A DNA stretch of 64,000 nt. It comes from Podarcis filfolensis (Eukaryota). Below are positions 29,991 to 63,814 of the stretch, one piece after another; position 1 is the stretch's first letter, and each line of letters begins with the position of its first letter. A program made the translations under genes and the position numbers. A model generated the notes under the pieces. The model saw nothing but the letters and a program-made list of their open reading frames with translations, was not told the DNA's origin and did not search any database. The DNA lies in NCBI GenBank assembly GCA_964270895.1, contig OZ185435.1. One strand, written 5' to 3'.

Positions 29991-30109
29991 CAACCATGGA
30001 TGGTAGCATTAAAAAGTAACATGCTTCTATGATATCCTGACCTAGATACTAACAACAGTCAAAGAAATGTAAGCCAGATTCCCATGGATTCCCCAGATTC
30101 CCTTAAGCT

Positions 30110-30370: not shown

Positions 30371-30399
30371 AAAAGTCCTCATGGATGGCGGCCAATCCA

Positions 30400-31800
30400 C
30401 GACAGGTTATGCCGCTGCACCATGCGTTAGTCTTCAGGTGCCGCAGGATCGCTGCTGCTGCTGCTGCTCTGGGAGCTGCCACGAATCTAGGAAGAAGCAA
30501 GCCATAGTAAGTCCCTTTTAACTTATCTGCCCCTTCACTGCTTCCGCATACCGTCCGCGTCACTTTCAGACGTGCGCCGGACAGGGAGGGCAGCAGCTCC
30601 TGGCGCGGCGAGCGGTTTCCAAGCGCTGCCTTTCCTCCGCCTGGAATCCCTCTGGATCTGTTCTGTTCGATCGAGCCAGGCATTTCGCCACCGGCGCGGC
30701 TATATCTGTGCCCGCCTCCCAACCTCCCCCCCGCTTCCACCTCGGCCTTGGAAAAAGCAATACATTGACGCGGACGGGGCTGCTGGTACGTCAAGGTTAA
30801 TTCGCGCGCTCGGCCAACGGCTTCGCTGCGAGCATTCCCCGCCCGCGGCCCTTGGAGCCTCCCCGCTTCACAATTAGCTGGTCCCGAGGAGGAGGAGGAG
30901 AGCGGGGACCCGCCTGCAAACTTTTCGCGCGGCCCTGCACGTGCGCGCCCCCCAAAAGTGGGGCCCGCCTTGCGCGATAGCGCCTCATCCCAGCCACGCG
31001 CTACTCAGAAGGAAGCGCCGTCCAAGTTCAGCGGGGCTTCCTCGCGGGTAGCCGCTTATAGGGCGGCAAGCCCGGCTTCGACGCCTCGAGGCAGGGCCCG
31101 GGGCAGCTGCTGCAGCAGCAGGAAGAGGTTTGGACGCGGCTCTAACTGGCCACGAGGCGAGCTTCCTTTCCCCTCAAGCAGCCCCAGGGAAGCTGGCCCT
31201 GCCCCGCCGCACCTGCTGCGAACACGCTGTGCGCCAGGGAGAGAGAAAAAGTTCAAGCAACGACCGAAGGGTTTCCCTTCTTTCTTTTCCTCCCTCCTCA
31301 TCTGGCGAGTCCGGCTTCTCCAGGCATTTCCGGGTTGGGGGGGGGGAAAGAAAAGCCTCTCTCTGTTATTTTTCTGTTTGCACATCGATCCCAACTCTTT
31401 GGACTGCTGGGCTTTTGTTTAAGATCAGCGAAGGAAAAGAAATTTCCCTCCCCCTTCTGCGTCTCTTCTCCGGTGCCTTCAGGATCAGGGGTATAAGGTA
31501 ACGCCGGGAGCGATCGGAAACTTTGGGTCCCTCCCCCTTTCTGAGAAGATATCTATTAGAGGGTCTTGGGGGCCGTTTCTCTCGACCTACGTCTCACACG
31601 CATATCCAGGTGAGTTTGTGCGGCACCTCACCTGGCTAACGCCGCGGCTTCCCCTCGGAAAGGAACCACTCTTCCCACCTGCAGCCCCATCTGTGGTCTG
31701 CCTTGACCTGCGGACAGGTAGCTGGGAGGCGACGCCCCCGAAAGGCTTGCCGATAATGGCCATTGGAAGGAATGCGTCGGTATTACTTGCGAAAGGATGT
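30400..31800 (+). promoter_or_regulatory. CRACR2B: CpG island; probable CRACR2B promoter and non-coding first exon(s)
   Basis: Abrupt rise in CpG and GC content; GC boxes; E2F-like TTTCGCGC at 30923-30930; E-box CACGTG at 30938-30943; plus-strand donors AAG|GTAACG (31498) and CAG|GTGAGT (31610). Assignment to CRACR2B is an inference. Confidence 0.8.
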
Positions 31801-32485
31801 GATTATTGAGCTGTAGAAAGCTTCCTTTTGAGGTATCCGGAGCCTTCAGTGCCTCGAATGCGTCCTAATCGGCTGACAGAAAATTCCACGAAAGCTTATG
31901 GTGCTGGGCCACCCACCTCACTTACTTACGTGGCTCCTCTCCCCGATGAGATTTCTAGAGAGTCAGCTGTTTTCATTCTCTTTTAGCAAACACGTTAAAG
32001 ATTCTTGTGGCATCTTAGGTGTGTTAATAAACGCTAACAAACTGATAATGAGGTTTTGTGAACACAGAGCCACTTCTTCAGTGCAATCTTAGACGATAAG
32101 ATGGTGACTTTATTTAGTTATTTTGTTTATAACCACATTTTAAAAACTAAAATGCGTAATGTGGTTCTTTAGCAAAGCACTCCTGAACCTGCTATCTGAA
32201 AAAATCCTCTGGGTTAGTTCTTGTGCAGTGACAGGAAGAATTTCATCAGGTGAAGCTGAAATGGATGCGGTTCAGTACTGAGAAAACTGCAGGTGTCAAA
32301 CTCTTGCATTGTTCTTCACTGCAGTTCTTGCCACTCAAGAGTTGCCTGAGACACTGAAGTTTGGCAGGTGGTGCTTTTCCTGGTGTGGAAAGAAACATGA
32401 TGGGAAATGTGTCGCCTGCTAAAGTTAAGCGTAAAGGCATATGAGCAAGACCACAAAGGTGTTTGTGTGTGTGTGTTTAAGATTA

Positions 32486-45143: not shown

Positions 45144-45344
45144 ATGGAAAGACCTGGGGAAGAACTCTCTGAAAGTTCCCATGCGGAGGACAAGGAAGAG
45201 GATGGAGCAGCCTCAGGCATCTCTTCTTCTCTCTGCTTGAATGATGTGGGAAACATGCAGGTGGAGATGCTGGAGAAGGCCAGGGAGCTCTTCAGGCTCT
45301 GTGACAAGGAGGAGAAGGGCTTTATCACCAAGCTGGACATGCAG
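45144..45344 (+). CDS. CRACR2B: CRACR2B first coding exon: MERPGEEL...MLEKARELFRLCDKEEKGFITKLDMQ (EF-hand 1)
   Basis: ATG in strong context gcaATGg; acceptor tatttgcag ending at 45099; donor CAG|GTAAGC; 201 coding nt. The start codon choice is inferred. Confidence 0.9.
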
Positions 45345-47630
45345 GTAAGCAGGAAAATTGACCGTTGCCACCTCCTTTGCAGAGGAAAAGCTCTTGCTTT
45401 CCTGAACTGCCACCTATGAGCAATGTACTGCCATGTGTAGATTTTATTTGCCATTGTGCTGGAGAGTGATTTCATCAACACCCCACTGATATCAGAAGTC
45501 TATAATGTGTGTGTGTTAAGGGGTGTGTGTGTAAGACTTGAAAACTCCTGTTGACACATCAGGGGCTGCTGTTGCTGCTGCTGTGAAATTTGCTCTGTCT
45601 GTACTTCCATTCCTTCTCTATCTTAGGGTGATGAAATGCCAGGGAGGACAAGGGATCCTGTATCTTTCACAGCAGTGTGGAATTTCTGGCAGGTGCAACC
45701 TGTCATGAAAGCTCCTGCCCAAAAGTTCCTTCGTCCACACAGCTATTAGAAATGTAGAGGCCCCTTTGCTCTCATGCCCCTGATCTACTGTTTCTCCTTC
45801 AAAGGCTATGCTGAATGACCGGTGCTTGAGCAAAGCACTAAGCACCTATCACCCAGACACAAAATTCCCCACTCTATGCTCAACAGGTTGATAGTGACCC
45901 AGCCTCAGACCTGCTCTCATTTCAGTATGGCTTCAGGCCTGGACATCAGGGCCGGCACAGCCGTTAGGTGAGGTGAGGCTGCCAGCAGAGAAGCAGCACC
46001 GGCAACGATTTTGGGTAAGATTGCACCAATTTCTGGCAAGATCTCACCGAAATCATGTAAGATCTTGCAGAGCACATGAGCTCTTGTGCAATTTCAGCGA
46101 GATTTCTCTAGAAATTGTCAGAATCTCACCCGAAATCTGTGCCAACAGTAAAGGCGGCAGGGCAGTACTTCCTGTTTCACCTGAAGTGGCAAGTGTGCTG
46201 GACATGGTACCGAAACTGCGTTGGTCCCCTTGGCTGATGACTTCTGGATGAGGGAGTTCAACCCTGTGCTTGAATTATTGTTATGGGTGGTTGCTTATGT
46301 TATGTTTGTTGCTGTTTTGATTGTATTGTGCGTGTTTTCTGTTGTTACATGCTGCGACTCACCCTGCAACCTTCTGATTGAAAGGCAGGGAATATGTATT
46401 AGAAAGAAATCATATCATTAGGCTGAGTGAGGGAGCTAGTGAGTGCACCATTTGCCCTCTATTGGAGGGCAGAGCTTGTCCTGTTCCTCCCAAATTGGTC
46501 TGCTTCCCTCAGGTGACACGGAGGACACTATCCGCTTGTTGGCGTTGGAGTAACTTTCACCTGCCAGTCCACTTGGCTTCTGGAATGGGGGGTAGCTTGT
46601 CCTTGTCTGAGACTGCAAAATATATTGGGCTGGCCCTGGGCCATTTTATTGCTTTTGTTAAAAACAAAACTAAACTGTAAATCACTCGGGCATCTACCAC
46701 CAGATCCAGATCTCACTCTGTGCCCATCTTTGGTTTAGGGTAGCAAGGTGAAAAAGGAGGGCAGGTTTCTTGCACCTTTGCAAGAGTTCTGTAGAAGAAA
46801 GAATGTCTGCAGGTGGAGTTTGACCTGCAAACTTCCACCTGCTGAATTCCCTTCTTTTGTACAACTGTTAAAGCTCCCAGAGCTCCTGAGGTCACTCGGG
46901 GAATTTATCCTGTTTCACGCTTATTAAGCAAGAGCTGGTTTCCCCAGTGAGTTGTGCAATAAATTATGTAATGCCAGATTTTGTACACACACCTGTTAAC
47001 AGAAGCACTTGCAGTATCTGTCCTGATGGAGTTGCAGTTTTGGTCCTCTTGTACCAAAACATCGTCTTTGCACCACCCCTTTCCTTATTATGAGATTGGA
47101 CTTCATAGACTTCTGTTGCCTTCTTTTGGAGAACGGCATGAGCTCTCAACAAGCTCCAGTGCTCATTGACTTGAGTTTGGCAAGGGTGAAAAATAAATGT
47201 AGTGAGGGGGGTATAGCAACCTCTGGCCCAATCTGTATGTTCAGTAGAAGCTTTCCCTCCTATCATGCATGCAAGCCATGAGCTAGAATGTTTTTGTTTG
47301 TTTGTGGAGGTGGAGCAGGAGCAGGAGCAGTCATGCAGCAGGAGGAGAATGGCAGGGGGATGCAGGAGGGACAGTCGAGGAATGGCACTGCTGTCCCCCA
47401 GCATTTGCTCCTTGAGGCAGCTGCCCCATCCTGCCTAACAGTAGGGCTGCCTCCTTTCCTCAGGTCACCTTTTTCTGGGTTTGGGCTCAGATTAAGAATT
47501 TGCAGCTTGCACACTTTGAATTTGGGCACTTGTGGCAGTAACAGTGAAGGGAGCTGGGAAAATAGGACGAATGGAAGTTTTTTCTTGTGGTTATAATGGT
47601 CTGTCCTTTCTTTTTCCTCCTCCTTCACAG

Positions 47631-47742
47631 CGGCTACAAAGTGAACTTCCTCTCACTCCTGAACAACTAGAATCTGTTTTTGACAGCCTAGAACAAGACA
47701 ATAATGGGTATCTCACGCCAGTTGAATTCAGTATGGGACTAG
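47631..47742 (+). CDS. CRACR2B: CRACR2B exon: RLQSELPLTPEQLESVFDSLEQDNNGYLTPVEFSMGL(G) (EF-hand 2)
   Basis: Long pyrimidine tract plus cag; donor GTAAGA; 112 nt. Confidence 0.96.
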
Positions 47743-47834
47743 GTAAGAGGAATGAGGGAGTGTGAAGCTCAGTGGCTATATGGAGAAAATGACAACTACT
47801 GTTGCTTAGCATGTATGTGGGCAGTGGACAGAAT

Positions 47835-48036
47835 GGGAAGAAATGGCCTTAGCTCAGTGGTAGAGTTTCTGCCTTGCATGCAGAGGGCCACAAATTCAAT
47901 CCCCAGCATCTCCAGGTAGGACTGGGAGAGGTTTCTTGCTGAAAACCCTGGAGAGCTGCTGCCAGTCAGTGTGGACAGTACTGACCTAGATGGACCAGTG
48001 AGTCTGATACAGTATAAGGCAGCTTCCTGTGTTCTT
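47835..48036 (+). mobile_element. near full-length tRNA-derived SINE (Squam3-like)
   Basis: tRNA-like head TAGCTCAGTGGTAGAG...TTCAATCCC, a body, and the tail ATAAGGCAGCTTCCTGTGTTC. Confidence 0.85.
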
Positions 48037-48198
48037 AACATAAATATTTTCCTTCCTTGGAATACTGGCAGTTTACCGTATATTAGGCAGCCAAGGCAAC
48101 TGCAGAGAATTAAGGAACTGTGGTATTGAGATAGAAACCCAGGGACCAGATTCAATACTCCTACATGGCAAATGTTATTTTTGCTAAATATAAAGCAG

Positions 48199-48209
48199 GC
48201 GTGCGCGCA

Positions 48210-48250
<41 letters not shown>
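48199..48250. repeat. compound (CG)n(CA)n alternating purine-pyrimidine tract
   Basis: GCGTGCGCGCATGCGCGCGCGC(AC)n ATATAT. Similar tracts at 52826-52850 and 58852-58896. Confidence 0.9.
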
Positions 48251-49780
48251 GAGAATGATGTGCAGCTTCTGGGGCTGTCTTTGCCATACATGCTTTCAAA
48301 CTTATCTCCAAAAGTGCAGTTCTTGGAGTAGTGAATTCCTGTATATTGCACCAGATTTCATGCTTGCACAGCATGATTGTGGAACGTGCACCCACCCTAC
48401 TGGTGAGCAATGCTGAGGTGGGGCTATATCATGCCATACACTCACTGTTTCTGCTGAGAAGGCTCTTTCCAATGCTTCCAGTTCAGCGCTCAAGCACGCA
48501 GCTCCTGTGGAGACATTGTGCAGCAGCCACCGCAGAGAGATCCACCTGCAGCAAAGTGCAGCCGAAGCTTTTTTGCCAAGTATGAGCTGCATGAGGGAGG
48601 GTTTTTCTTTCTTTCTATGGCCCTGTGCTGATTAGAAGAAGCCAAGTTCCTTTTTTCTCCTTAAGAAAACAGCTTTAAGTCAACAGTTCCAGGAATCTGA
48701 CGAAGATTCCAGGAAGAGTGCTGATCAAAGCTATCAGGAGTGGGGAGTTAGGCAAGAAGGTAACGGCAGGCTCTAATTTGAACTAGAACACAGTCATGTT
48801 CGTAGTGTGTTTTGCACAAGCCATAAATGTCGTGGTGTCCTAAAGCTCAGTGGGTAACATCTGGAATTGGACCGACCTGTATTGACATTGTGCAATTGTG
48901 CCAGTCCCCAGTCTCTAAGGCCAGAGTGGTTAACTCTTAAAACAACCATACTTTAATGGATCAAACCAATGATGGGTTGGGGAGGGCTGTGTATCAGGCT
49001 GTATTGCCTTTTTCATTTAGTAAGTTCTAAAGTGTGACAGATATTGTGCTGCTGTGCATTAAAAGTCTTCATATGGGCAAAGTAAGAAACCATAAGGCAT
49101 TTTAATTTAAAGGTGTTTTCTATAAAGAGAAGCTTATTGCAATATATGTTTTAGTCAGATGGTTATTTTTTAGTTTTACCCTCCCCTATGTACCAGTCCG
49201 TATGCAAAGATAAAACTTTAATTTTTATTTCTGTTTTTATTGTCCTTTCTGTTAGAAGTTACACATTTTGGGGGGGGGGGTAACACTATGGAAGTCTCTC
49301 AAACTTGGCATTGTTTAGAGCCTCAGCATGTATTAATCTGGCCCTGATCACTTACCTGGAAGTAAGACCCATTGAATTCAAGTGGGGCTCATTTCTGAGT
49401 AGACATGTATAGAACTCCATGGTAAATGCGTTGTTTAAAGTCCAGGACGCAGTCCTTGAACCTGTTTTGAGTGGAACGGCTTACCCTTGGAACATTTGGA
49501 ATAACAAAAGTGATATGGAGTAATGCAGAGTGCCTTTGAGCATGTGAAGAGCTTCCTTCCTTCATTACAGAAGTGAACCATGGTTCTGTGTTTGAAGTGG
49601 ACCAGTTCCAGTTCTTTTAATTTTTACTGTTGCCCTGATTTGGCTAAAAGAGGAAGGAGTCTGATATGGAGCTTGTGGATTTCACAAGCTCTCTCCCCTC
49701 ATAATTCAAACACTGATGCAAGCCATACCTGGGATTAGAGAGATCTTATAGTCCTTTGTTTTTCTCATTCCACTGACTAG

Positions 49781-49937
49781 GCAAATTCATAGGGATTGAG
49801 CAGTATGAGAGCTCTGGAAGCACCAGGCACGAGGAGACTTTTGAGTCAGGCTGGTCAGATGACTTGGACCAGGAAGAGGAAGAGAAGAGGTTTTGCTCCA
49901 TGTTGGAGCAGCTCGAAGCATCCCAGGTCTTTGAAGA
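49781..49937 (+). CDS. CRACR2B: CRACR2B exon: (G)KFIGIEQYESSGSTRHEETFESGWSDDLDQEEEEKRFCSMLEQLEASQVFE(D)
   Basis: Acceptor gactag, donor GTAAGT; 157 nt; phase 1 to 2. The ORF track shows a different frame here. Confidence 0.93.
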
Positions 49938-49973
49938 GTAAGTTGGAACTTTCCAACCTGTGCATGTTTATTA

Positions 49974-50196
49974 CAGTGGTACTTTGGTTTAAGAACAGCT
50001 TAGTTTATGAACAACTTGGATTAAGAACACTGCAAACCCAGAAGTAGGTGTTTTGGTTTGTGAATTTTGCCTTGGAAGTAGAACATGTTCTGCTTCCTGT
50101 TGAGTGTGTTCCATTTGTAAATTGAGTCCCACGCTGCTAGGGGAAAGCACGCCTTGGTTTAAGAACGGGTTAAGTTCGTAAACCAAGGTACCACTG
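49974..50196. mobile_element. Tigger-type MITE (second family)
   Basis: TIRs CAGTGGTACTTTGGTTTA / TAAACCAAGGTACCACTG, TA on both sides. Confidence 0.88.
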
Positions 50197-50668
50197 TATT
50201 ACGATTGCTGTTGCTATCTTTAGGAATCTTGTTTTGCAGAAGCATTGCTTTGACCCTTTCTATCTATCATGTCCTCTTCATTAATATGCATGTGCTATGT
50301 TTTCCTGGGTTGCATTGCTACAACAGGAATGGGGAACCTGTGGTCTTCCAGATGATGTTGGGACTAGCATGGGTAGCAGTGGACTAGTAGAAAGGGATGG
50401 GTGTATTAGGAGCATAATAAGGCTCGGACAAAATCACATAGGGGAAGAGATTCTCCAACAGTGTATACATGTTCAGATGCATCTTTACTTTTTAAGATGA
50501 GGACTTTTGACCTCTTATTTCCTGGATTTTCTCATCTCAGGGAGGGATGACTAGGAGGCTTAACTATAAAGTACTTTAGAATAAGTTCTTTATAGCCTGT
50601 TTGGTGCAAGGACTATGCTTATCTATTACTCTCAAGCTAATAAACTTTACTGTTTGTCTTTGCTCCAG

Positions 50669-50815
50669 TCAGAACGAGGTTCAGGAGCTCTGGGCTCAAC
50701 TCCGGAAAGAAAAGCCAGAACTCCTAACCAGTTTTGAAGAATTTCTCTTCCACATTTCCTCATATGTCAGGGACATACATCACGAGAAGGAATCAATTGA
50801 GCAGGCGTTGAAACG
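50669..50815 (+). CDS. CRACR2B: CRACR2B exon: QNEVQELWAQLRKEKPELLTSFEEFLFHISSYVRDIHHEKESIEQALK(R)
   Basis: Acceptor tgctccag, donor GTAAGC; 147 nt. Confidence 0.95.
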
Positions 50816-51370
50816 GTAAGCAGTTTCTGGACATCATGTGACTACGCCATAGAAAGTGCAATGCAGTCTTAGGATGCTGTAAGTGGGAGGGAAAGTTTCA
50901 CTCAGCATCCACAAGAGGATTCGTGAATGCCAAAGAAGGAGGTGGAAGTGTCCAAATGCCTTCAGCGGGACCTATTGCTCTATGAATATTTTCTTCCTCT
51001 ATAACCCAATCACACCTGCAGCAAACAGGCTGTGCACACACTAAAATTTTGTCTGTATCCAGTGTGCTTCCACCACTAGTTTAGGAAGCGGTGTACACAC
51101 AGTGTTAGCCACGATCCACTTCCATCTGGTACTTATCCTGTCATTGCTTTTGAAATACTGTTTTGATATATTTTCCCACAACGCTCCCCTTCCAAAAAAA
51201 CGCAAAAACCTTCCCCAGCTTCAACCCAGATTGGGAAAAAGAACAGACTAGCTGTTTTTTAAGCTAGTAATGTGTACACAGCCTTAGTCTAACCTTAAAC
51301 AGCATAAGCAGTCGGGTTACAAAAGTTTCCTGAGAAAATCTTCTCAATGTGTAGCTTTTTAAGCCTTTCT

Positions 51371-51387
51371 GGCGCCCCCTAGTGCCA
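51371..51387 (-). promoter_or_regulatory. CTCF core motif
   Basis: Minus strand TGGCACTAGGGGGCGCC, one mismatch from the core CCACTAGGGGGCGC. Confidence 0.55.
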
Positions 51388-51579
51388 GAGGATTTCCATA
51401 TCAATACTCAAGTTCCTGAAAAGTGAGACAGCACATCTTATGTTAGCTGAGATGTATTTATTTTCTTTCAAAGTGGAGAGGCAATTCTCTCTCTTCCCCA
51501 CCCCCAAATCCCATCTCCCACTTTGTCTTTACGCTGTATCTGTTCCTTGCATTTCATCCCTCTTGCTCTGTGCTTTTAG

Positions 51580-51670
51580 GAGGGAGGTAGACCATGACCG
51601 CGAAATCAGGTGCCTTTATGAAGAAATGGAGCAACAAATCAAAGCAGAAAGGGAGCGGCTGCTGAGCCAG
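51580..51670 (+). CDS. CRACR2B: CRACR2B exon: REVDHDREIRCLYEEMEQQIKAERERLLSQ (coiled coil)
   Basis: Acceptor cttttag, donor GTAAAC; 91 nt. The LYEEMEQQI motif is typical of the large-Rab coiled coil. Confidence 0.96.
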
Positions 51671-51833
51671 GTAAACACCTCATTCCTTCACTCTCAGGAT
51701 GCCTGAGCTAGACACTGAGCTCAGTTGCTAAATCAATGAGCCACATCCTTCCAAAGTGCCTGAGATTTATTTTTATGCTGAACGTTGGAGTGAAGAAAAA
51801 AACGAAAAGCACCAATTTATCTGCTTTTTGCAG

Positions 51834-51926
51834 GGATCAATGAAGCATGAGAAGAGCAGCTTGCTTCAGAAAGAGCTGCAGAGCAAAGAACAAGAATTTG
51901 AGAAGATGTTGTACCACCAGAAAAAG
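51834..51926 (+). CDS. CRACR2B: CRACR2B exon: GSMKHEKSSLLQKELQSKEQEFEKMLYHQKK
   Basis: Acceptor tttttgcag, donor GTGACT; 93 nt. Confidence 0.93.
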
Positions 51927-52686
51927 GTGACTTGGAGGGGGTGACCCTTGTTTCTTTTGCTTGGATTTGGATTTTACCCTCCACATTGTCTACACAGGTC
52001 CCGTTGAACTGGCTGGCAGTGTCTTTTGACACCAAAGTCATCGCTTCTTACACATGTACAGGGCTAGAGCTGGATTTGGGCTCTTGTGCCTGAGATGCCA
52101 CCTTCGCCCCAGCTCCTGCTGGTTCCTGTTGGTGTTACAAGAAAAACCAGTGCCAAAAGCCTTCATTGTAGGGAAACAGACAGCATTGCATACTCTGCTG
52201 TGACCAGCTGTTTCACTTCTGCAAGTCATGGGAAGCCCTGAAGTGATGAGTAGACATATGTGAGTGCCCCCCAGTATATAAGATACTTTAGGGAAGGGAA
52301 ATTCTTCTCACTGTTCTCCTCCCCACCCTCCATCAGCACCAGACAGACTAGGTGTGCTAAAGGAGGAAAAACTCTCAAATCCTCAAATGCATCAGCTGTC
52401 GGAGAATCAGTGCCCTGTAAGGTGGGGAGCAAGTAATTTTTTGGAGGGGCTCCTTGGCCCAGTGTAGGAGCTGCCTGTGATTATTTTATCTCTCCAGCCT
52501 TATTCTTCAGTGGCTTAAGGGACTTGTAGGAATACAATAAGAGCCCCTGCCAGATCAGGCCAAAGGCCTCTCCAGTCCAGTATGGGAAGCCCACAAGCAG
52601 GATAGGAGTGTAACACTCTCCTTCGCATGTATTCCCCAGCAACCGGCGTACAGAGACACATACTGCCTCTAATACATGCTCTACAC

Positions 52687-52822
52687 TAGTGTTTCCCAAA
52701 CTTGGGTCTCTGGCTGGTTTTGGACTACAATTCCCATCATCCCTATCTAGCAGGACCAGTAGTCAGGGTTGATGGGAATTGTAGTCCAAAAACAGCTGGA
52801 GACCCAAATTTGGGAAACACTG
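52687..52822. mobile_element. palindromic hAT MITE
   Basis: AGTGTTTCCCAAACTTGGGTCTC / GAGACCCAAATTTGGGAAACACT; degenerate TSD CTCTACAC/CTCTGCGC. Confidence 0.85.
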
Positions 52823-52852
52823 CTCTGCGCGCGCACACACACACACACACCC

Positions 52853-53210
52853 GGCCTTCATGTCCAGTAGCCATTAGCCATTTATAGCTTTATCCTCCAG
52901 GAGTTTGTCGAATTCCCTTTTAATGGTCACCACCACCACTTCTTGTAGGAGTGAATTCCATAGTTCAATCTTGCACTTGGTGAAGAACTTCTTTTCTGGC
53001 TGCCTTGACTCTCCCACCCTTCAGCTTCCCTGAATGATGTTGGATTCTGGTAATCTATAAGGGAGGGAAAAATTATATTCTCTTTCTCCGTGCTTTGCAT
53101 TATATGAAACATCTTGCGTCATGACCCCACCACAACCACTGTCCTTTCCCTGACAAGCTAAAAAACCCTGAGCATTGTAACCTCTTCTCATAGAGGAGTT
53201 GCTCCAGTTC
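52853..53210 (-). mobile_element. CR1-type LINE 3' fragment
   Basis: Reverse complement of the CR1 end (TAGCCATT...CCTCCAGGAGTTTGTC...GAATTCCATAGTT). Confidence 0.6.
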
Positions 53211-53799
53211 ACCAATAATTTGGCTTGTCCTTTTCTGCACCTTTAGATTCATCTGTACACTTGCATAAGACACAGTGTCCTCCTTTAACCTCCAAGGCCC
53301 ACAACTTTAGTATGTGATGCCAGCCCCATTCATATTTTAGCTCCAAACAGGTGACTCCACCTCCACCAACCCAAGGAAGGCCATCTGCTCTGTTTGCACA
53401 TGACGTTATCATCGTGCCATAATATCCTCTTAAAGGAATGCGGCTGAGAGATAACACTGTGTAATTTGCGTTATTGGTGCAGTTTGGGTAAGTCCAGTGT
53501 CAGTATTTGCTCTGGGTTGTTTAAAAACTAAAGAGCAGTTACGTTGGGGCAAAACAACAGAGAGGAGATTAAGAATTCCCCCATCTGGGTTTTCTCAGTT
53601 CAGGGTCCCTTCCAACTCTTCAATTCTATGACTCTGAGGTTACCCACTCATGTGACCAACAGACATATAGATTAGGACCACAAAAGACAACTTCACAATA
53701 GGGAATGAAAATGCAGCTAAAAGGTCTTTGGGGTATTGGTACAATGGTAATTACTGTACCCCTGCAGTGCAGGAATCTCAGCTACAGCATCCATGACAG

Positions 53800-53950
53800 A
53801 TGGCCCCCCAACCTCTGCTTATAAACCTCCAGTTCACCACCTTCCAAGGGAATCGCTTCCACGGTCAAACAGTCCTTACTGTGAGAAAGGTCTTCCTGAT
53901 GTTTAGTTGGACTTTCCTTTCTAGTAACTTAAATCCATTGGTTCAGGTCC
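53800..53950 (-). mobile_element. CR1 ORF2 C-terminal remnant
   Basis: Minus strand reads as RTNGFKL...LNIRKTFLTVRTV.PW, like the CR1 ORF2 C-terminus. Confidence 0.6.
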
Positions 53951-54159
53951 TTAACATGTTATCATTATTACTTGAATGCATTGCATCTTAAAAAAAACCA
54001 CAGATGTATTGCTCTGCTTTCTGTTTTCCATTGTGCAACTTTTTTTTTAATTTAACATATTCCCCTACAGCTCAAAGCTGCTTGCAGACACTGGCTACTG
54101 ATGCCTTTGTACTTTTGGTTTTTCAGAACTGTTCATCTTGATTTCTTACATATTTTTAG

Positions 54160-54347
54160 CTGGAACATCAGTTACAATCCCAGAGCTCAGAGCAGCTGGA
54201 AATGCGGGTGCAAAATGAGAGGTTGAAAATCTTGAACGACAATCTCCTGGACCAACTGGAGAGAAGCAAATGGGAGCTGGAGGTAGCCCGAGGTCACCTG
54301 CAACAGCTGCAGAAAGAAGCCCAGCTAGAGCAGGAACAGAAAAACAG
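54160..54347 (+). CDS. CRACR2B: CRACR2B exon: LEHQLQSQSSEQLEMRVQNERLKILNDNLLDQLERSKWELEVARGHLQQLQKEAQLEQEQKN(R)
   Basis: Acceptor tatttttag, donor AG|GTGTGT; 188 nt; heptad pattern. Confidence 0.94.
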
Positions 54348-54890
54348 GTGTGTTGGGGTGGGGCTGTAGAACATGCAATGAAAAGTGCCAGTTGCTTTTG
54401 CTGTGTGATGCTGGTTTACGCTAATTAGTTAATCAGTGGGACTACAGAATGTAGAAATGAATAGCAATAATATGTGGCTACTGCAAACTGCAGTACTGGC
54501 AGTATTTTCAGGTGCCACATAATACCTGGTCTGCATTTGTAAAAAATTGATCTTTTGGTGTGGCAGCACCTACATTTTTGAACTCTCTGACTATTGACAT
54601 CAGACAGGTCCCTTCACTGTACTCTTTTCAGTGCCTGCTAAAAGTGTTTTTGTTTAGGCAAGCCTTACCCAGATATGTAGACAACCACCTTGAGGTTGTT
54701 GTTGTTGTTGTTTTACAGTCAAGTGTTACATTATTTTTATGAAATAAAATTAAAGGGGGTCTGTAAGTACGTACACTTTCTAGCTTCCAGGACTGAGTTA
54801 AAGGATTAGAACATGCATGATGTTTTTATTCTCTTCCACAAATCTACTTCCTATGTGGCCTTGAGATAGTAACATTTCTTTTCTCTCTGT

Positions 54891-55018
54891 CAGGGGTAGC
54901 TAACGTTGTGCCATTTAGATGTTCTTAGACTCCAGTTCCCATCGGCCCCAGTCAGCATGGACAATGATGGGAGATGGAGTCCAACGATATCTGGAAGGTA
55001 GCGCATTGGCTATCCCGG
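54891..55018. mobile_element. degenerate hAT MITE
   Basis: CAGGGGTAGC...GCTATCCCGG ends, and an inner AGATG...ATCTGGA hairpin like that of 6612-6747. Confidence 0.55.
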
Positions 55019-55908
55019 CTCTGTATAAACTAGAGATAAAAATAATAATTTTTATATAAATATAAATATTTCCTGGTTACATTTCCTAGAAGACCATGAT
55101 AGAAATGGCTCGGAAAGCAAGCCCCACAGCAATTCACCATAAAAGGTCAATCCAAATCTTGTATTGTCGAAACCACGGCTCCTACCAGTCTGAGAACAAA
55201 CAATGTGGCAAACAATAACACTGATCTCCACAGCAATCAGTCAGATTACTGTTCAGAATGTATGATGTCACTGCAAATTGGGCAACCTTTTGCTTTATTG
55301 AAGAGTAAATCTACTTTCTAATACTGAATTGGCCAAAACATGACTTGAGTTATAAACCGGGATAAGAATTTGGACGCAACGTCTGCAGAACAATTAGATC
55401 CCAGTAGGTAGATCTTCAGCCACCTTTTCTTCTCAGATACAAAGTCCCAAATGGTACAGTGGTGTTGTTTTTAGTAATAATAATTTAAAAAATCTAGAGC
55501 TGATGTAGGCATTTTAACTTAAATGCAGTATGCACAGTTGACATTCTTTTTCTTATTTTGAACTGTATGCAAACATAGACTAATGGATCATTTTTAACAG
55601 GAAAGGCTGCTTTGGGAGGTGGAGTGATTGGGGAGCAGAGCAGTGTGGTGGGTGCAAAAAGGGTGCGTGTAAATTTGGTCCTCAGCTGGAATTTCTCTTG
55701 GAAACCAAGAGAATGATATTTTGCATCAGCAAGTCATGGAGAGCAAGAATGGGAGTCAGCTCCTAACCCAGTGTTAATTTAATTAGTCCACCCTCTGCCC
55801 TTGATTGCTGCCAGCAGCTTTGGCATTTGGGTCATATTATCAACGTTTGCACAGGACAAAACTTGTAGCCCTTAAAACATTAACCCTCCCTTCCCCTTTT
55901 AAATGTAG

Positions 55909-55980
55909 GGATGTATTCAGAGTCTCTAAGAATATGCAGAAAGAAAAGAAAAGCCTCCTGCGACAACTGGAACTGCTCAG
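55909..55980 (+). CDS. CRACR2B: CRACR2B exon: DVFRVSKNMQKEKKSLLRQLELL(R)
   Basis: Acceptor aatgtag, donor GTAAAG; 72 nt. Confidence 0.96.
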
Positions 55981-56214
55981 GTAAAGGTGGGGGCATCTTG
56001 ACATCTGCTCTTCACCATCTGCCTTGAGGGCTTGTTCACATGTATAGGGAGGTATAGAATAAAAAAGCTCCTTGGTGTTATGTCAGCTATTCAAACAAAA
56101 CCAGCAGAATTGGCGAGACCCACAGGGCTGCCACTTGACCTAAGCAGCAAGCTGTACAGGGGCCAGTGCTTTGGGTGATTCAGGTCCCCAGTGGCAATAG
56201 ATGGTGCTAAAGTA

Positions 56215-56455
56215 CAGTCATACCTCAGGTTGAATGTGCTTCAGGTTGAGCGCATTCGAGTTGTGCTCCACGGCAACCCAGAAGTAATGGAGCACGTTAC
56301 TTCCAGGTTTTGCCGCTCGCACATGCGCAGACGCTCAAAATGACGTCATGCGCGGAAGCGGCAACATGCGCAGACGCGCCGTCGCATCTTATGCTGTGTT
56401 CAGGATGCAAACAGGGCTCTGGAATGGATCCCGTTCACATCCCGAGGTTCTACTG
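56215..56455. mobile_element. Tigger-type MITE (third family, CpG-rich)
   Basis: TA|CAGTCATACCTC...GAGGTTCTACTG|TA. Confidence 0.8.
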
Positions 56456-56668
56456 TAATGTCTGAGAGCAGCACCAAAGCAATTTCTGCAGTGAAGATTT
56501 AGGCCACATGATGCTTCTGTGAAAACTGAATGGGGATTTGTGGTTGCGAAAAGGAGTGGTGTCTTCCCCTTTCTCACTTCTCTTTGAGGATTGTTAGTTC
56601 CCTACCGTAGTATGTGTAGAGCAACAGCTACTGCTTACCTCTGTGTGTCTTTCTTTCCTTTGGAGCAG

Positions 56669-56825
56669 AGAGATGAACAAGAAGCTGCGAGACGAGAGAG
56701 ATGCCTTTGAAGCCAAGAAGCTGGTTAGTCTGAGAAAGAAAATTCTAATCCCCCGTCGCCTCCCCTTTGCAGCTTGCTGTTGTTGCCATCACTTGGGGTC
56801 ATTTCATTTACAGGGGGGGCATTGA
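56669..56825 (+). CDS. CRACR2B: CRACR2B composite exon. 56669-56723 is shared (EMNKKLRDERDAFEAKKL); read-through to the stop gives the short-isoform tail VSLRKKILIPRRLPFAACCCCHHLGSFHLQGGH*
   Basis: Acceptor ggagcag; internal donor CTG|GTTAGT at 56724; TGA at 56823-56825. Short CDS totals 1218 nt = 405 aa. Confidence 0.9.
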
Positions 56826-58851
56826 CTGAGAAACCCTGTAGTGCCTGCATGTGGACTTATTATTATTATTTTTAAGAGAGAGCTGCACATTTTTAAACCA
56901 GGCAATTACAAAGGGGGCAATAAGGACTGCTGGCTCCTGACTCTACAAGAAAGCGTTTACAGTTGGGTGTCCCTCCAACCTGGAGGGGGAGAAAATCTTT
57001 TGCACATCTTGAACTTTGTACACTAAGGCTTCCATTCAGAGGAACCGTAGCTGAACCTCCATGTTTTAAGGCTGAGCCATTGCCACCTAGCTTGGAGAAG
57101 GCCCAGTTACGTTCTTTCTCTTCCCACCACCACCATTCTGCAGAGTAGTCTGGAATTCATCTCTGGAACCACCTTGCCTCATTCCAGCCTATAGTTCTTC
57201 TGTTATATCACCTTGTGCCTATATCCTTCTAGGCTTCCATTGTCATGCAGCCCACAATTAAGAGACTGAAAACAAGATGTCTTTTTGTCTGTTTCTGCCT
57301 CTTAGTTTGGCCTGCTCCTGGAATGGGCCTTTTCCATCCCTGGGCAGTTTGTTTTTGGTAGGAGAGATGTAATGTCCACAAAACATACCACTTAGTAGAT
57401 TTGATCGTAGACCAATGAGGCAGACAACCAAAATGTGAAGATGAGCCAAAAGACCTCTTGCTGCTGATTTCCCTGCTCCACAAATGCAGGGCAGGAATGA
57501 AGTATAAAGGGGGGGGGGTGTATGCTGATCAGCTATCTAGTCTTTAGTGTTGTACAAGCGTAGGGTGGATGTTTTTATTGAAGCTGCTATGTATGTTTTT
57601 GTGTAAAAAGGAGAGGGAAGTTTCCAGTGCAATGTTCTAGTCTTTGGGTATGATTGTGCAAACATATGTGCACCTGTCTGTCCATGGGTGGCCCATCCTG
57701 TTTTGTCCCTCCCCAACACACACTGCTGCTGCCTCCCCACTGAAGCCTTGCTTACCTAGGAGTGGAGAGAGAGAAACTCCAAAGCTGAGCAAGTGTGAGC
57801 TGTTCTACAAAGCTTTGCTGCAGGCCTCTCCTACTCGCCTAGAAGGGAGCGTTCCAGCTGCAGTGGAAGTGGTGGGGCAGGCGGAGAGCCGGTGGGGCAC
57901 CGCCTTTTGTGTTTCCACCACCAGAGGTGGCTTCTTTACCTTGCCTTATGAGTGGGCTGGCTCTCTGGCTGTCCCATGACTCATCTTTCTGATTACTAGG
58001 CCTGTGGCTGCATCTCCAGATAAATCTGGGGGCATGTGATCTCCATAGTCTCAATGATATCATTAAATGTAGCAGAAGCAATAGGGAGAAACTGTCTTCT
58101 GCTGTTGCAGTTCAGAGAGAGCAATGCAGGGAGTTCTCAGATCCTATTTGGCACTTTAATGTCTTTTTTGAAGAGCATCCCTTTCATGCTGTACCGTGGG
58201 ATACGTTTTAGAACTCTTGAGTGGGGTCGCATTGAAAGCAATTTACAGTATGGCATGGAGGGACGTGGAGAGACTTCATATGGACATAAATTGGTTTTTC
58301 TTCACATGTCGAAGTAGTCGCTGGATGGTCCCTTTGGCAGTCTGCTATCTCTGTTCTCTAGTGGAATATGGGCTCCAGGCAAGCTACAATGGCTTTTGTT
58401 GTCTGATCCTCTTTGAAAAGTAAATATTAATGAGATGGAGGTTCTGTTGGATACTGGGAAGAAAGGCACCCACCACTCTTCATGCAGATTGCATCTGATG
58501 TGGGAATTCAAAAAGAGCAAGCTTTTGATCTGCATACAGTCATTCTGCAGATTTAAAGAACTGATATAGTGCAGAAACAAATAATATAACACTGTGGACT
58601 GTGCTTGCATAAAGGCAGGTTGCATGGGTTAGAGTTAGCACATCAGACTCTTGAAGTAAAATGTAAACCTTCAGTTAATGGAAAAAAGGATCCTTATTTG
58701 TTTCTATTTTTTAAACATCCCCCCTTTTTTCTGAACCTCAGTCTTGTATCAAGATGTACCAACTACAGCTATGCTGGATGAACTGGAATGAAGGAAGTTG
58801 AGTTCTAATTTTTCTAGGGGGGGGAAATATGTTGCATTATCTTCCTGTCAA

Positions 58852-58862
58852 CTATATATGCG

Positions 58863-58895
<33 letters not shown>

Positions 58896-58896
58896 G
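58852..58896. repeat. (TA)n(GC)n(AC)n compound microsatellite
   Basis: Direct inspection. Confidence 0.9.
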
Positions 58897-60532
58897 ATAT
58901 CTGCTCATGCTAACTGCAATTTGCAGCAATCTATCCATTGCAAGAGTGCGCAGTAGAATAGGAAAAAACAAAAGATGTCTGTTTGCCTTAGTTAAAAAAA
59001 GTATGGTGTTTCTAGAAAGCTTTTTCTACCATCAAAGAGAATTATCAAGGAGAAAAGAAGTCTGCTGATGCAGCAGCAACTTCCTGTCTTGAAGCCTCTT
59101 GATGATGGGCCCTTTGTATATTTCTCTTTTGTCCAAGACTGCAGTGCTTGTGTCTGTCTGTTGGAGCATCTGCAGGCTGTTGCTTTTCTAAGATAGAGAA
59201 GAGCACAAACTCCAGTGCACACGTGGGGTATACTGGCATAATGTGGATCTAGTGAGGTTTTTGGTTTTAAAGCCTGAAGGGCCTTCCTAGCCTGATGTTT
59301 CTGTTGCTGTTAGATTTGCAACTGTACTGTTTTTAGCTAGAGATTACTGGTTGGTAGTCAATACCAGTCTTCATTCACTGTGACGTAATGATGGACCAGT
59401 CAGGTTGCCAGAGTTTAACAGTGCATCATTCTTTAGGAGAGATATCTGGCTTGTTCTTGCCTGCACGTTTATGGCAGTTTGCCAGCGCTGCAAGACATAT
59501 TTCCAAGTCTGCTTCAACATATAACAGGGAGACCTTGCAATAGTGAAATATTAAAATCTTCTAAATACGCCAAGACTGTTTATGCATAAATGCCAGCACT
59601 GGAAATCATTTGGCACTGTGAGGGAGAAGGCCAAACTGGACGAAAGAGATCTGAGTGGATCCATGCACACTTAAATGGGAGGAAATGTCCTGCTGGATGA
59701 AGAGCTTGAACTTTGATTTCGGTTTCTGCCAAAATCTTTAATGCTTCAGTCAGCACAGTACATAGGCAAGACAAGAGTTAAAAGGCACAGCAGGTGCCTT
59801 GCATGGCGAAGTGCAGCTAAGACATTGATCCAGCAGGTGATTTGCCCCCTGCTTCATCCTTTTGAAGAGATTGCAGTGGGCACATCTGAGTTCTCAGATT
59901 GGACCAAGCAATCAGGCACTCCAGTCCTAGTCTAATTTGCTCACAGATGCTTCTAAAAGCATTTCGAAAGAGTTTTCCAACGTTTACTCTAGTAAGGCCC
60001 TGAGATACTGTGCAAAACTAGGACAGTTGAAGCACAGTGTGGAAACTCTGCTGATACCTTTACAAGTTCCAAGGCTGCAGAGGACTACTCGGCTCCTTGC
60101 ATCTTCTTTTCCTCTGCCAATCCCTTCAGGTCCCCAGTTGTTCATTAATCCGGATTACCACCCTAAACATTCTGAAGTTTTGAAATTGATATTTGGAAAC
60201 ATCGTGCCTTGAGCTTCTGCATTTTGTACTGCGCTTTGTTGTACCGCTGTGTGTTATGAATGGAAACTGAGTTTCCCCAAGTCCATACATCCACAAGTTT
60301 TGGAGGGAGTTGCGTGCCATGTACAATCTGGTCCTTTGTGTGTCCCTTAATGAGAAACCTGCATGCACCTTCCAGAAGTCTAGGAACCGGTCTCCAGGTA
60401 CAACCCATTCATTCACAGGTCTAGTTACAGTATATGTGTCTTTGGTATGTGTTTATGACAAATATGATGATGGCAAAATACTGCAAAATTCATGCTGTTG
60501 TTGGAATGTGAGCCTGTGATCCAGACTTCCAT

Positions 60533-60901
60533 AATAAAATGCCATGCACCCTGTTATCGTTCTCATCAAATATTTCATGCTTGTGTGTTCTGTCATTGCA
60601 ATGCAATATTCCTTTATCGTCTGTTTTTAAATGCTAATGTTACACTGAGCCAATAAAAGCTGGCAAGAGCTAGAGAAACAGCCAGGAAACAATTGTCTCT
60701 TTCGTGCTCATGTTCCATTGCGTAAAGTGTTTCTTTTGTATGACTGTATTATGACAGACCATTTAGAGGTCCAATGAGATGGTTAAGACTGGGTTCTGAG
60801 TCTGCCCAAAGCACACAATAAAACCCACTTGAATGAAACAACTAATATATTTATGAATAATCTTTCCATTCATCATTCTAAACCGTATTCAGCACAATAA
60901 A
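60533..60901 (+). terminator. CRACR2B: candidate intronic poly(A) signal cluster for the short CRACR2B isoform
   Basis: AATAAA at 60533, 60652, 60817 and 60896; GU-rich TGTGTGTTCTGT about 45 nt after the first. Confidence 0.45.
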
Positions 60902-61272
60902 TGTCCCATTATGATTAATCTGTTGTGAGCGATCCACACAACTTTGGAAGCAGGGTGCAGAACTGTTACATCTCTGGGATGCATTTTAAAGCTGGGAAAT
61001 TGTACTTTCACCCTGAGAATGCATTCTTTGCTATTGGAATTTAAATTTTAAATATAAATAACAAGTGGGGTACTGAAGTACCGTAAGTTGAGTACTTTCT
61101 GTATGCCAAACCCAAAACTGAAAAACCTTTTAATGTCTCATCAGCCACAAAATGGCAGCTCCTGGGGTAATCTTGACTAACTATTGGAGAGCCTCTCCCA
61201 AAGTGACATGGTGGTTGTTTTTTCTTAATTTACTTAGATGACAGATTCCAAATTGCTCTCTCTAATTTTCAG

Positions 61273-61352
61273 GCACTTGAAAGCAAAAGACCCCTCTTGA
61301 AGAAGGGGTCAGCGATAGGCAAATACCTAGTGGAGGAGAAGCCAGTCAAACG
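61273..61352 (+). CDS. CRACR2B: CRACR2B long-isoform exon: ALESKRPLLKKGSAIGKYLVEEKPVK(R)
   Basis: Acceptor aattttcag; phase 0 matches the 56724 donor. KKGSAIGKY resembles KKRSGSVIGKY in CRACR2A (recalled). Donor CG|GTCAGA; 80 nt. Confidence 0.88.
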
Positions 61353-62167
61353 GTCAGAGCTCAATATGTTGTGTTGTGTCCCGCTGCATGCTGTCGGTCT
61401 GTAGTCACCACAGTCGGTCTGTTGGGTCACACTGTTCTCTCCCTTTCTCCTCTTCAGCTGAACTAAGGTTGAGGCAATGGGTGTCCTTGGGGAATTGCCC
61501 TTTGATGAACTTGGGACTGTGGGGCACTGGTGACTGAATGAGACTGTGTAGGTGGGTAGGAGGGGGTGAGTCTAATTTTGATAACAAGGAGATTCAACAT
61601 ATACACACCCTCAAGTTTCCTACATTGCATGCATTTAGAGAGGAGGGGCAGAACACCATAAGCAAAGTTATTTAACACATTTCTGAACTATGTGAGCAGC
61701 CCTGGCCTCCTTTGGGATGGTAATATGTAAATATAGAGCACAGATAGGCATATTGGATAATCAAGGCAGTTTGCCAAAAATTATGAACCTCTGGCCCTGT
61801 CCACACCTCCACATGTTAATTGTTCATTTGTTTTGTTCATGCATTCATTTCTGTGGGTGTTGACACTTCTTGGAGCTCATCCAAAAGTACAATTCTCAGT
61901 GTCCCATCTAGTGGAGCCCCAAGAGGCAAAACCAATTTAAAAACCAGCATACATTTGTAGTGTGGATATGCCTTAGGGATTCTGGAACCCATTGATATAC
62001 CTGCTGCTGCTCCTCTCCTCCCTCCTCACATTTTAAGATTGTTGGTTTCCTGTCCTCATCAGTGCTGACGTTACATGAAAGTATGGGTAAGTTTTCTGTA
62101 AATGCTGATGTTGTTTGTGCTGATGCTTTTGGACATTTCTTCCCATCGTTTGTGTGCCTTGGCACAG

Positions 62168-62459
62168 GCAGCTTGCTCCAGGAAGTACTCCCCTTGTCCT
62201 GCCAAAAGATTTTTATTTGGAAGAGAAAAACTGTAAACTCTTCCTGACCAACACTGCCAGTTTGAAGCAGGGAAGAGGAATCAATTCATCTGTGGAGGAC
62301 TATGCGGTTCTTAGGAAAACAGAGAGGCAGGAAACAGCAGGAAATGTTGGGAAGCCAAAGTCTCTGATGAAGACCAGCACATTCCAGAGAGAAAAGACCA
62401 ACAGACCTAATTATCTTCATTTATCGCCAAGAAGGCTGCCCATTGGTAATGAAACTGTG
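62168..62459 (+). CDS. CRACR2B: CRACR2B long-isoform linker exon: QLAPGSTPLVLPKDFY...LHLSPRRLPIGNETV
   Basis: Acceptor ggcacag, phase 2 in and phase 0 out; 292 nt open; donor GTG|GTGAGT. SPRRLPIGNE resembles SPRGQPVGKE in CRACR2A (recalled). Confidence 0.82.
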
Positions 62460-63678
62460 GTGAGTCTAGCTGGCGGGGGGTGGGGAATACTAACCTTATG
62501 TATTGTCTTTTTGTTATTGAATCTTGAATCATTTGTGGGCTTTTTTGTGTATACTAAATGGCCCATCCTGACTTTAAGTTGGAGTCCACAGGTCACGCTG
62601 GGGTATAGGAAGGAAGAGTGGCATTTCAGTACTTTGGAGAGCTCCAAGTGAGCAACTTGCTCAGGAAAAAGCTGAAGCTTGACTGCAACCTTATAACTCC
62701 TATAGTCCAGGTTACCTATATCTCCTGTCTACTTCCCTGCCTGTAACTTTTTAAAACGAGGACCTCCTGGCCTGGAGGTGAGTCCTTCTGCATCTGACAG
62801 TTGCAGGCATTGTGGAATGGGATGTACTTGGTTCCTTGCATGAATCAGGCTCATGGGAGTGGCCATGAAGTTCCCTATGTTTAGGGTCCACAGGTTGACA
62901 ACCATCACCCCGGGTTCAGAATTGTAGCCTCGTTCTGTTCTTCAGCCAGCAGTATAGCAGCCACAGCCTCAATTGATTCAGTCTTCCAAGAATCGTTTAG
63001 GGCCAGGGACATGACAATTAGCTTCCTGCACTAATATGCATATTATATTCCTAGTAGCAATTATATTTTCTAATTTTGAAGTGACATTGAACAGAAATGC
63101 TAAGGAGAAAAACAAGAAAATCCATCAGCAAAACCTTTGGAATTTTTTTGTTTACCTCCTGTATCTATTCAGGGCCAAATGTTGCAAAGCAGGTGGATAT
63201 TTTTAAAATTGCTCTTCAGTCTTTGCTTCCTCCCATATGGTATAGTCTGAAAACTGTTTCAGCTAGGTGAATATTAACAGGCTCTGTACAGATATTTTGT
63301 ACTCCAGGTGAGTTGGGGAAAAGGCCATCACTTCACTATAGGGGTGACATGAATGACTGGATCAGGAGATCCCACATTTATTTAAACACATTATCTCCCT
63401 GATAGTGTGAGGTTAAAATTGCTGGACCATGTGAGCTTGAGTGTTACACCTGATCTTTATGCAGATGCTTTCTAGGCAGTGAGAAGTGGGGATAATATCT
63501 GAACATAGCCTCAGTCTATGCAACTGGTTGTGCAGATATGAACATGGGTATAAATTTGCTCATATTAGTGTTCCCACTGTCCGTTCCTTGCAATGTTTTA
63601 AATGCAATTTGTACCCTAGCTCTATAAACTTTTCTTCTTCCTTTTCATTCTTACCTTGATAATGGCTTTTACATCCAG

Positions 63679-63814
63679 GTATTGGAGCCAGCTAGTTCTT
63701 CTCCTGACCGTGTCTTCAAAGTAGTGTTTCTTGGTAATTCCGGAGTTGGCAAGAGCACCTTCATCCATCGCTTCTGCTACAATAGATTCCTGGCTGGGAT
63801 CAGCTCAACTATTG
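63679..63814 (+). CDS. CRACR2B: CRACR2B long-isoform exon, start of the Rab GTPase domain: VLEPASSSPDRVFKVVFLGNSGVGKSTFIHRFCYNRFLAGISSTI(G)
   Basis: Acceptor acatccag, donor G|GTAACT; 136 nt. Contains G1 GxxxxGKS/T and the switch-I Thr in STIG. Confidence 0.95.

Follow-up and report, generated by a model that had tools for sequence, protein, structure and literature searches.

Exons for a Rab domain in a lacertid CRACR2B (EFCAB4A) gene, a candidate fourth large Rab of jawed vertebrates

Two large Rab GTPases, CRACR2a and Rab45, are coiled-coil adaptors for dynein that are fused to their own Rab, and CRACR2a requires Ca2+, intact EF-hands and a polybasic prenylated tail (PMC6504896). The linker of CRACR2A has been reported to be proline-rich and to bind Vav1 (PMC8303950). 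A 2021 review of the large Rabs covers Rab44, Rab45 and Rab46 only and does not mention CRACR2B (PMC8303950), and in a 2012 phylogeny of the Rab family Rab44 and Rab45 are the only EF-hand Rabs treated. We found no paper that describes CRACR2B (EFCAB4A) as Rab-containing or as a large Rab; the literature searched omits most subscription journals, and this silence is not proof. Here we describe a CRACR2B gene in a stretch of 64,000 nucleotides from the lizard Podarcis filfolensis (assembly GCA_964270895.1, contig OZ185435.1), referred to as the window. A homology-guided gene model confirmed that a lacertid CRACR2B (EFCAB4A) orthologue of 17 coding exons has its first 12 in the window, the remaining five Rab exons being predicted beyond base 64000. 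The explanation that we consider very likely overall is a single CRACR2B gene with two C-termini, the long form with a Rab domain being ancestral to jawed vertebrates.

The gene model was built by tblastn with the EFCAB4A protein of Elgaria multicarinata (XP_062973172.1), followed by a splice-site search. It runs on the plus strand from an ATG at 45144 to 63814, comprises 12 coding exons with canonical borders throughout, and encodes 541 residues plus one base. Exon 12, which contains the P-loop, stops 186 bases short of the end of the window. A preliminary description of the locus had proposed that a phase-0 donor at 56724 joins three downstream exons without a stop or a conflict of phase. 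This was confirmed, as the intervals 56669–56723, 61273–61352, 62168–62459 and 63679–63814 all have AG...GT flanks and, spliced in that frame, form 187 codons with zero stops. The phase is 0 at the donor, 2 at the end of exon 10, 0 at the end of exon 11 and 1 at the end of exon 12. The spliced frame starts with EMNKKLRDERDAFEAKKL, passes ALESKRPLLKKGSAIGKYLVEEKPVK and a linker of 97 amino acids and reaches VLEPASSSPDRVFKVVFLGNSGVGKSTFIHRFCYNRFLAGISSTI(G), so that within the window the EF-hand exons and the Rab P-loop exon are linked by a single continuous open frame. Exon 9 (56669–56723, with the phase-0 donor CTG/GTTAGT at 56724) is the last exon common to the short and long forms and is 50–100% identical across the EFCAB4A proteins of gnathostomes. 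Exon 10 (61273–61352) is specific to the long form, carries a KKGSxIGKYL...EKPVK motif and contains no Met, and exon 11 (62168–62459) encodes a poorly conserved linker that ends in a conserved LSPRxxPIGxE motif; both were placed by the splice model. The Rab domain begins in exon 12 (63679–63814), which is identified by the splice model and by Pfam and PDB matches. Its earlier placement at about residues 500–541 was exact: the model ends at residue 541 and the Rab exon spans residues 497–541.

Exon 12 scores 27.4 bits against the Pfam Ras family, above the cutoff of 21.6, and matches Rab structures in the PDB, RASEF among them. A comparison of its 45 amino acids with the PDB was also tried as a discriminator between paralogues, and was rejected because it returned generic Rab matches only. 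The G1 P-loop consensus GxxxxGK[ST] is present as GNSGVGKS, and the exon closes with ISSTIG, in which STIG holds the switch-I (G2) Thr and begins RabF1; relatives continue with IGVDY or IGIDY. When the 45 amino acids were searched against 1.84 billion representative proteins, the search led to the Elgaria multicarinata EFCAB4A protein of 702 amino acids (XP_062973172.1), with 93% identity over its residues 505–547. The closest relative is EFCAB4A of the sister species Podarcis muralis (XP_077787784.1, 696 amino acids), for which existing annotation shows a long form with a Ras domain. Over 541/541 window residues the two proteins are 98.5% identical, well outside what chance could produce, and the Podarcis muralis locus is 94.5% identical to the window DNA.

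Exact gene models give 17 coding exons in both Podarcis and Elgaria, and the exon sizes in the window (201, 112, 157, 147, 91, 93, 188, 72, 55, 80, 292 and 136 nucleotides) are those of exons 1–12 of Podarcis muralis. The two proteins differ at 8 of 541 positions; seven of these lie in exons 10–12, mostly in the linker. Exon 12 is 98% identical between the two species, and its 36 Rab-domain codons are identical in protein and DNA. In Podarcis muralis the last five exons, located 1.0–6.9 kilobases (kb) past exon 12, complete the Rab with WDTAGQERF, GNKMD, ECSAR and a KRKGCCL end; their counterparts in this lizard are predicted, by analogy, to measure 82, 115, 108, 77 and 85 nucleotides and to begin about 1.0, 3.7, 4.6, 5.4 and 6.8 kb past exon 12. 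The motifs WDTAGQERF, GNKMD, ECSAR, YFRRV and MYDVT are intact in Podarcis muralis, Lacerta, P. raffonei, Zootoca and Elgaria, and the C-termini of the orthologues read ...NKRKGCCL, a polybasic stretch followed by CCx. The full proteins of Podarcis muralis and Elgaria hold a complete set of G1–G5 motifs and score 164 bits against Pfam Ras. The solved structure nearest to their Rab domain is the Rab of RASEF (2p5s), at 176 bits as against at most 139 for ordinary Rabs.

If the donor at 56724 (GTTAGT) is left unused, exon 9 is extended by 33 codons at 56724–56825, with the stop codon at 56823–56825. The resulting tail, VSLRKKILIPRRLPFAACCCCHHLGSFHLQGGH (...PFAACCCCHH...GGH before the stop), completes a protein of about 405 amino acids. 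In the annotations, short forms of Zootoca, Varanus, Rhineura, snakes, a turtle, the coelacanth, frogs and placentals end in the same tail, which runs on from exon 9 without a break in the DNA of zebra and frog. A run of 3–8 Cys residues keeps its position in the tail from the coelacanth via frogs, squamates and a turtle to placentals, and is absent from marsupial tails (LLAQEATALLVPSKTA) and from some bird tails. Judged from its sequence, this one gene has two alternative C-termini, which are switched at the donor CTG/GTTAGT at 56724. Because the Cys-rich tail is homologous, occupies the same position and is contiguous with exon 9, the mammalian protein is identified as the short isoform of CRACR2B. 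The Cys cluster suggests palmitoylation as a membrane anchor that would replace the prenylated Rab.

Several points weigh against a single gene with two C-termini as we have set it out. In this lizard the join between exons 9 and 10 is predicted from DNA and from the gene models of relatives. The complete Rab domain is likewise seen in relatives, the window stopping before G3–G5 and the prenylation motif. The long form is credited by analogy with dynein binding, Ca2+ sensing, GTPase activity and lipidation, and its linker is not proline-rich, unlike that of CRACR2A (PMC8303950). Some annotations split the locus into a short EFCAB4A and a Rab-only gene in Zootoca, Latimeria, Rhincodon and many B10K birds, and a passerine transcript contig from Logan joins exons 11–15 and keeps 2.1 kb of intron 10 upstream.

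The split annotations and the passerine contig both lend weight to the alternative that the Rab exons are a separate unit, transcribed from a promoter of their own within intron 10 or exon 11 and translated from a first Met in MKTSTF (about 62367), in which case the protein of about 700 amino acids would be an artefact of prediction. In Zootoca, RefSeq lists an EFCAB4A of 405 amino acids and, 5.6 kb downstream, a separate 'EFCAB4B-like' gene of 231 amino acids that starts at exactly this Met in exon 11. Rab-only fragments recur elsewhere: the Rab half is also named 'EFCAB4B-like' in Latimeria and Rhincodon and 'RAB44 protein, partial' in dozens of B10K birds and in Pelodiscus, and the B10K birds contain many paired 'EFC4A partial' and 'RAB44 partial' entries. 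Short forms without EF-hands are moreover known for Rab44 and Rab45 (PMC8303950). The Logan contig, with intron 10 unspliced and exons 11–15 spliced, begins within intron 10 and is neutral both on the exon 9–10 join and on an internal start.

A separate unit is difficult to reconcile with exon 10, which is in phase with exon 9, lacks a Met and is conserved at 58–96% identity from eel to lizards; such an exon makes sense only when spliced to exon 9. The frame is open through exons 10 and 11 in all species compared, and the exon 9–10 join is present in the Ensembl-derived models of Podarcis (415 amino acids) and Corvus (469 amino acids), which then retain intron 10. RefSeq fuses both halves in more than 100 species, and CRACR2A and invertebrate homologues are fused in the same way. 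A Rab-only isoform might also coexist with the long form rather than replace it. We regard a separate Rab gene as improbable.

Intron 10 (61353–62167) is retained in the Podarcis and Corvus models and in a passerine contig from which the later introns have been removed. It may be slowly spliced or regulated, or may hold an internal start site.

Between Podarcis and Elgaria, the ratio of nonsynonymous to synonymous substitution rates (dN/dS) is 0.11 for exons 1–9 and 0.13 for the Rab domain, as against 0.53 for the linker, whose values span 0.53–0.8 in all; the pair Podarcis and Zootoca gives 0.12 for the Rab domain. Since the Rab values of 0.12–0.13 compare with 0.11 for exons 1–9, the Rab module is under purifying selection in squamates, with a constraint equal to that on the rest of the protein. 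These ratios bear on a second alternative, namely that the downstream exons are decaying remnants of an unused Rab module in a gene heading towards the mammalian state. The exon 9 donor is indeed weak (GTTAGT), the poly-Cys short form is intact and conserved, and snakes, which are squamates too, show the short form only. Decay would nevertheless have to be squared with low Rab ratios among Podarcis, Zootoca and Elgaria, similar to those for the part that holds the EF-hands and the coiled coil, with exons 10–12 that carry neither stop nor frameshift, with 36 Rab codons in exon 12 that match Podarcis muralis in protein and DNA, and with G motifs that are all intact in three lacertid relatives. 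We consider it very unlikely.

Two motifs of the linker region are kept across jawed vertebrates and in part in CRACR2A: KKGSxIGKYL...EDKPVKRQL in exon 10 and LSPRGQPIGTE at 62410–62450, just before the Rab. Exon 10 as a whole falls to 31% identity in the coelacanth model and is partly recognisable in CRACR2A.

The identity of the gene was addressed with trees and with gene order. In a tree of the N-terminal (EF-hand and coiled-coil) region, all gnathostome EFCAB4A proteins form one clade, with a support of 99 in the Shimodaira–Hasegawa-like approximate likelihood ratio test (SH-aLRT). This clade includes the placental, marsupial and frog proteins of about 400 amino acids, and the window sequence stands beside Podarcis within the squamates. 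The CRACR2A (EFCAB4B) proteins of Corvus and of the shark Heptranchias form a separate clade (SH-aLRT 100). Heptranchias has both an EFCAB4A long form (695 amino acids) and an EFCAB4B protein (724 amino acids), and the two are therefore paralogues and not variants of naming.

Gene order was compared on the upstream side, the position of the downstream neighbour, a CD151-like tetraspanin, lying outside the window. The zebra locus carries, on one strand, a patatin gene (491 amino acids), EFCAB4A (398 amino acids) and a tetraspanin gene (253 amino acids). In the window, an exon of a patatin-like phospholipase gene (PNPLA2-like, patatin family) lies at 11492–11782, upstream of CRACR2B and on the same plus strand, and is 80% identical over 84 amino acids to the patatin gene that lies next to EFCAB4A, on its upstream side, in zebra. 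An atlas search with this exon resolved to family level, and the synteny is therefore based on the zebra locus.

Together, the tree, the patatin neighbour and the common poly-Cys read-through tail support the identification of the gene as the CRACR2B/EFCAB4A orthologue, the name under which it had first been described. That it is instead CRACR2A or another large-Rab paralogue, so that mammals lost nothing, is extremely unlikely: several database entries for the Rab half do read 'EFCAB4B-like' or 'RAB44', but these misnamed fragments cluster with the EFCAB4A Rab domains in the Rab tree, the window gene falls with mammalian EFCAB4A and away from EFCAB4B, Heptranchias carries both genes, and the neighbour and the tail agree with mammalian CRACR2B.

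A phylogeny of the Rab domain against CRACR2A, RASEF and RAB44, which the preliminary description had called for, was informative in part. CRACR2A emerged as the nearest paralogue, in a clade separate from EFCAB4A in the N-terminal tree. In the Rab-only tree the monophyly of the EFCAB4A Rab domains was not resolved, and the approximately unbiased test does not reject it (p = 0.34). The sequence set was without true RAB44 and vertebrate RASEF Rab domains, and EFCAB4A was accordingly not placed relative to them. In the N-terminal tree the mammalian and frog EFCAB4A proteins are joined in one group (SH-aLRT 97), in conflict with the species tree; their branches are long and their amino-acid composition is unusual. 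This grouping may reflect faster N-terminal evolution after loss of the Rab module, or may be a long-branch artefact.

A search with the Elgaria protein returned more than 100 clusters of EFCAB4A/CRACR2B proteins of 660–830 amino acids with a PF00071 domain. Holders of this long form include lizards, turtles, crocodilians, birds, sharks, rays, lungfish, coelacanth, paddlefish, gar, bowfin and eels. In a length-restricted search, the proteins of mammals (placentals and marsupials, 385–403 amino acids) and of anurans (398–403 amino acids) had EF-hand and PF27574 domains only; the marsupial state rests on protein models, and monotremes lie outside the comparison. A search with the Rab domain alone returned no mammalian or amphibian protein at orthologue-level identity. 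Identities in this search were 74–97% in sauropsids, 65–66% in sharks and 63% in the coelacanth, and the best mammalian matches, at 45–52%, group with EFCAB4B. A tblastn search of the CRACR2B–CD151 interval, suggested in the preliminary description as a means of dating the loss, was run in zebra and gave no trace of exons 10–17 in the 3.4 kb that separate the EFCAB4A stop from the tetraspanin gene.

Because forms with a complete Rab span sharks to birds and the placental and marsupial proteins are of 385–403 amino acids without a Ras domain, the simplest reading, which these distributions support, is that a long form ancestral to jawed vertebrates was reduced to the short form in mammals. The proposal of an ancestral large Rab of about 700 amino acids, of which mammals use the short form, thus gains support. 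The accompanying statement that reptiles keep the long form applies to lizards, turtles and crocodilians and does not extend to snakes as annotated. In at least 14 snake species the only EFCAB4A forms are of about 413 amino acids, and no snake long form or Rab fragment was present among the matches searched. In the pit viper Protobothrops, exons 10–13 were not found in the 10 kb downstream, a flank that is perhaps too short, which makes the result suggestive only. Four anurans likewise have short forms only (398–403 amino acids), with a tail that is an exon 9 read-through as in the window; in the frog Mixophyes, exons 10–13 were not found in 10 kb downstream, with the same reservation about the length of the flank. 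For comparison, exons 9 and 10 lie 4.6–9.9 kb apart in lizards. The long form appears to have been dropped in mammals and was probably dropped in frogs and snakes. Snakes may have lost the Rab module in a third event, internal to squamates, or their exons may lie further away.

The remaining exons of the window gene, all on the plus strand and located by tblastn, complete the N-terminal half. Exon 1 (45144–45344; donor GTAAGC) contains the start ATG, an acidic N-terminus and the first EF-hand, with a weak Pfam EF-hand_6 match. The second EF-hand, DNNGYLTPVEF, is encoded by exon 2 (47631–47742), which is 76–100% identical across gnathostome EFCAB4A proteins and which, like those that follow, is also defined by the splice model. 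After exon 3 (49781–49937), the helical/coiled-coil region begins in exon 4 (50669–50815), where orthologues have PF27574 (EFCAB4A_helical); it is followed by exon 5 (51580–51670), exon 6 (51834–51926), exon 7 (54160–54347), which encodes coiled coil, and exon 8 (55909–55980). At 13 kb upstream of the ATG, positions 30001–32000 are rich in GC (GC content 0.56 versus about 0.43 elsewhere); this stretch could be a CpG-island promoter or 5′ untranslated exon of CRACR2B, or belong to another gene. Intron 9 contains a (GC)n(AC)n microsatellite at 58862–58896 that looks ordinary.

As annotation, the gene is ordinary. Public gene models cover the sister species and more than 100 other non-mammalian vertebrates, Pfam already has a family EFCAB4A_helical, and the early caveat that automated annotations might already hold these exons was right, as RefSeq does so for the sister species. 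What is new is evolutionary, a tidy but minor point: an ancestral fourth large Rab that mammals have lost, as frogs and snakes apparently have too. On balance we lean, by a modest degree, towards the view that the CRACR2B long form (CRACR2B-L) is a genuine fourth vertebrate large Rab, an early-vertebrate sister paralogue of CRACR2A/Rab46 whose Rab was repeatedly discarded (in mammals, frogs and snakes) while the poly-Cys short isoform was always kept. It would have been overlooked in the Rab literature because mammals are without it.

If CRACR2B-L is counted, most jawed vertebrates have a fourth large Rab beside Rab44, Rab45/RASEF and Rab46/CRACR2A, and human CRACR2B would be the surviving short isoform of a formerly Rab-fused adaptor, not a protein that was always free of a GTPase. 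The losses would then amount to a natural experiment on what a built-in Rab adds to an EF-hand/coiled-coil adaptor, with chicken, Anolis and spotted gar as tractable models for the contribution of the fused Rab. The same reading explains a common annotation error, the naming of the Rab half of this locus as 'RAB44' or 'EFCAB4B-like'. The CRACR2B long form opens no long-standing question.

In the mechanism that we propose, the choice would be made at the weak phase-0 donor at 56724. When it is skipped, a short protein of about 405 amino acids with a poly-Cys tail, the mammalian form, would be made. When it is used, exon 9 would be joined to exons 10–12 and to the five exons beyond 64000, giving a protein of about 696 amino acids with two EF-hands, a long helical/coiled-coil region, a variable linker, a Rab GTPase and a polybasic, double-Cys prenylation tail. 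By analogy with CRACR2A/Rab46 and RASEF/Rab45, this long form would be anchored to membranes and regulated by GTP, and possibly by Ca2+, and would act as an adaptor, most likely for dynein–dynactin, in which the built-in Rab anchors the cargo. The short form would instead be brought to membranes by its Cys cluster.

Among known systems, mammalian CRACR2B (about 394–403 amino acids) shares with the window gene exons 1–9, the patatin neighbour and a Cys-rich C-terminus from read-through of the exon 9 donor, and differs in being without exons 10–17. RASEF (Rab45) resembles the long form as a large Rab with EF-hands and coiled coil that acts as a dynein adaptor (PMC6504896); as a paralogue it is less close, it has an N-terminal region of its own, and its dynein binding is Ca2+-independent (PMC6504896). 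The closest parallel is the long isoform of CRACR2A (Rab46, EFCAB4B), the nearest paralogue in both the N-terminal and the Rab tree, which likewise has a pair of EF-hands, a coiled coil, a linker and a Rab with a polybasic prenylated tail. CRACR2A also makes a short isoform of about 395 amino acids without the Rab, and has parts of the exon 10 motif and of the pre-Rab motif in common with CRACR2B. It differs in forming a separate gnathostome clade and in a Rab domain that is only about 50% identical, and the short form of CRACR2B, unlike that of CRACR2A, has a poly-Cys read-through tail at its C-terminus. Mammals have kept the Rab domain of CRACR2A but not that of CRACR2B.

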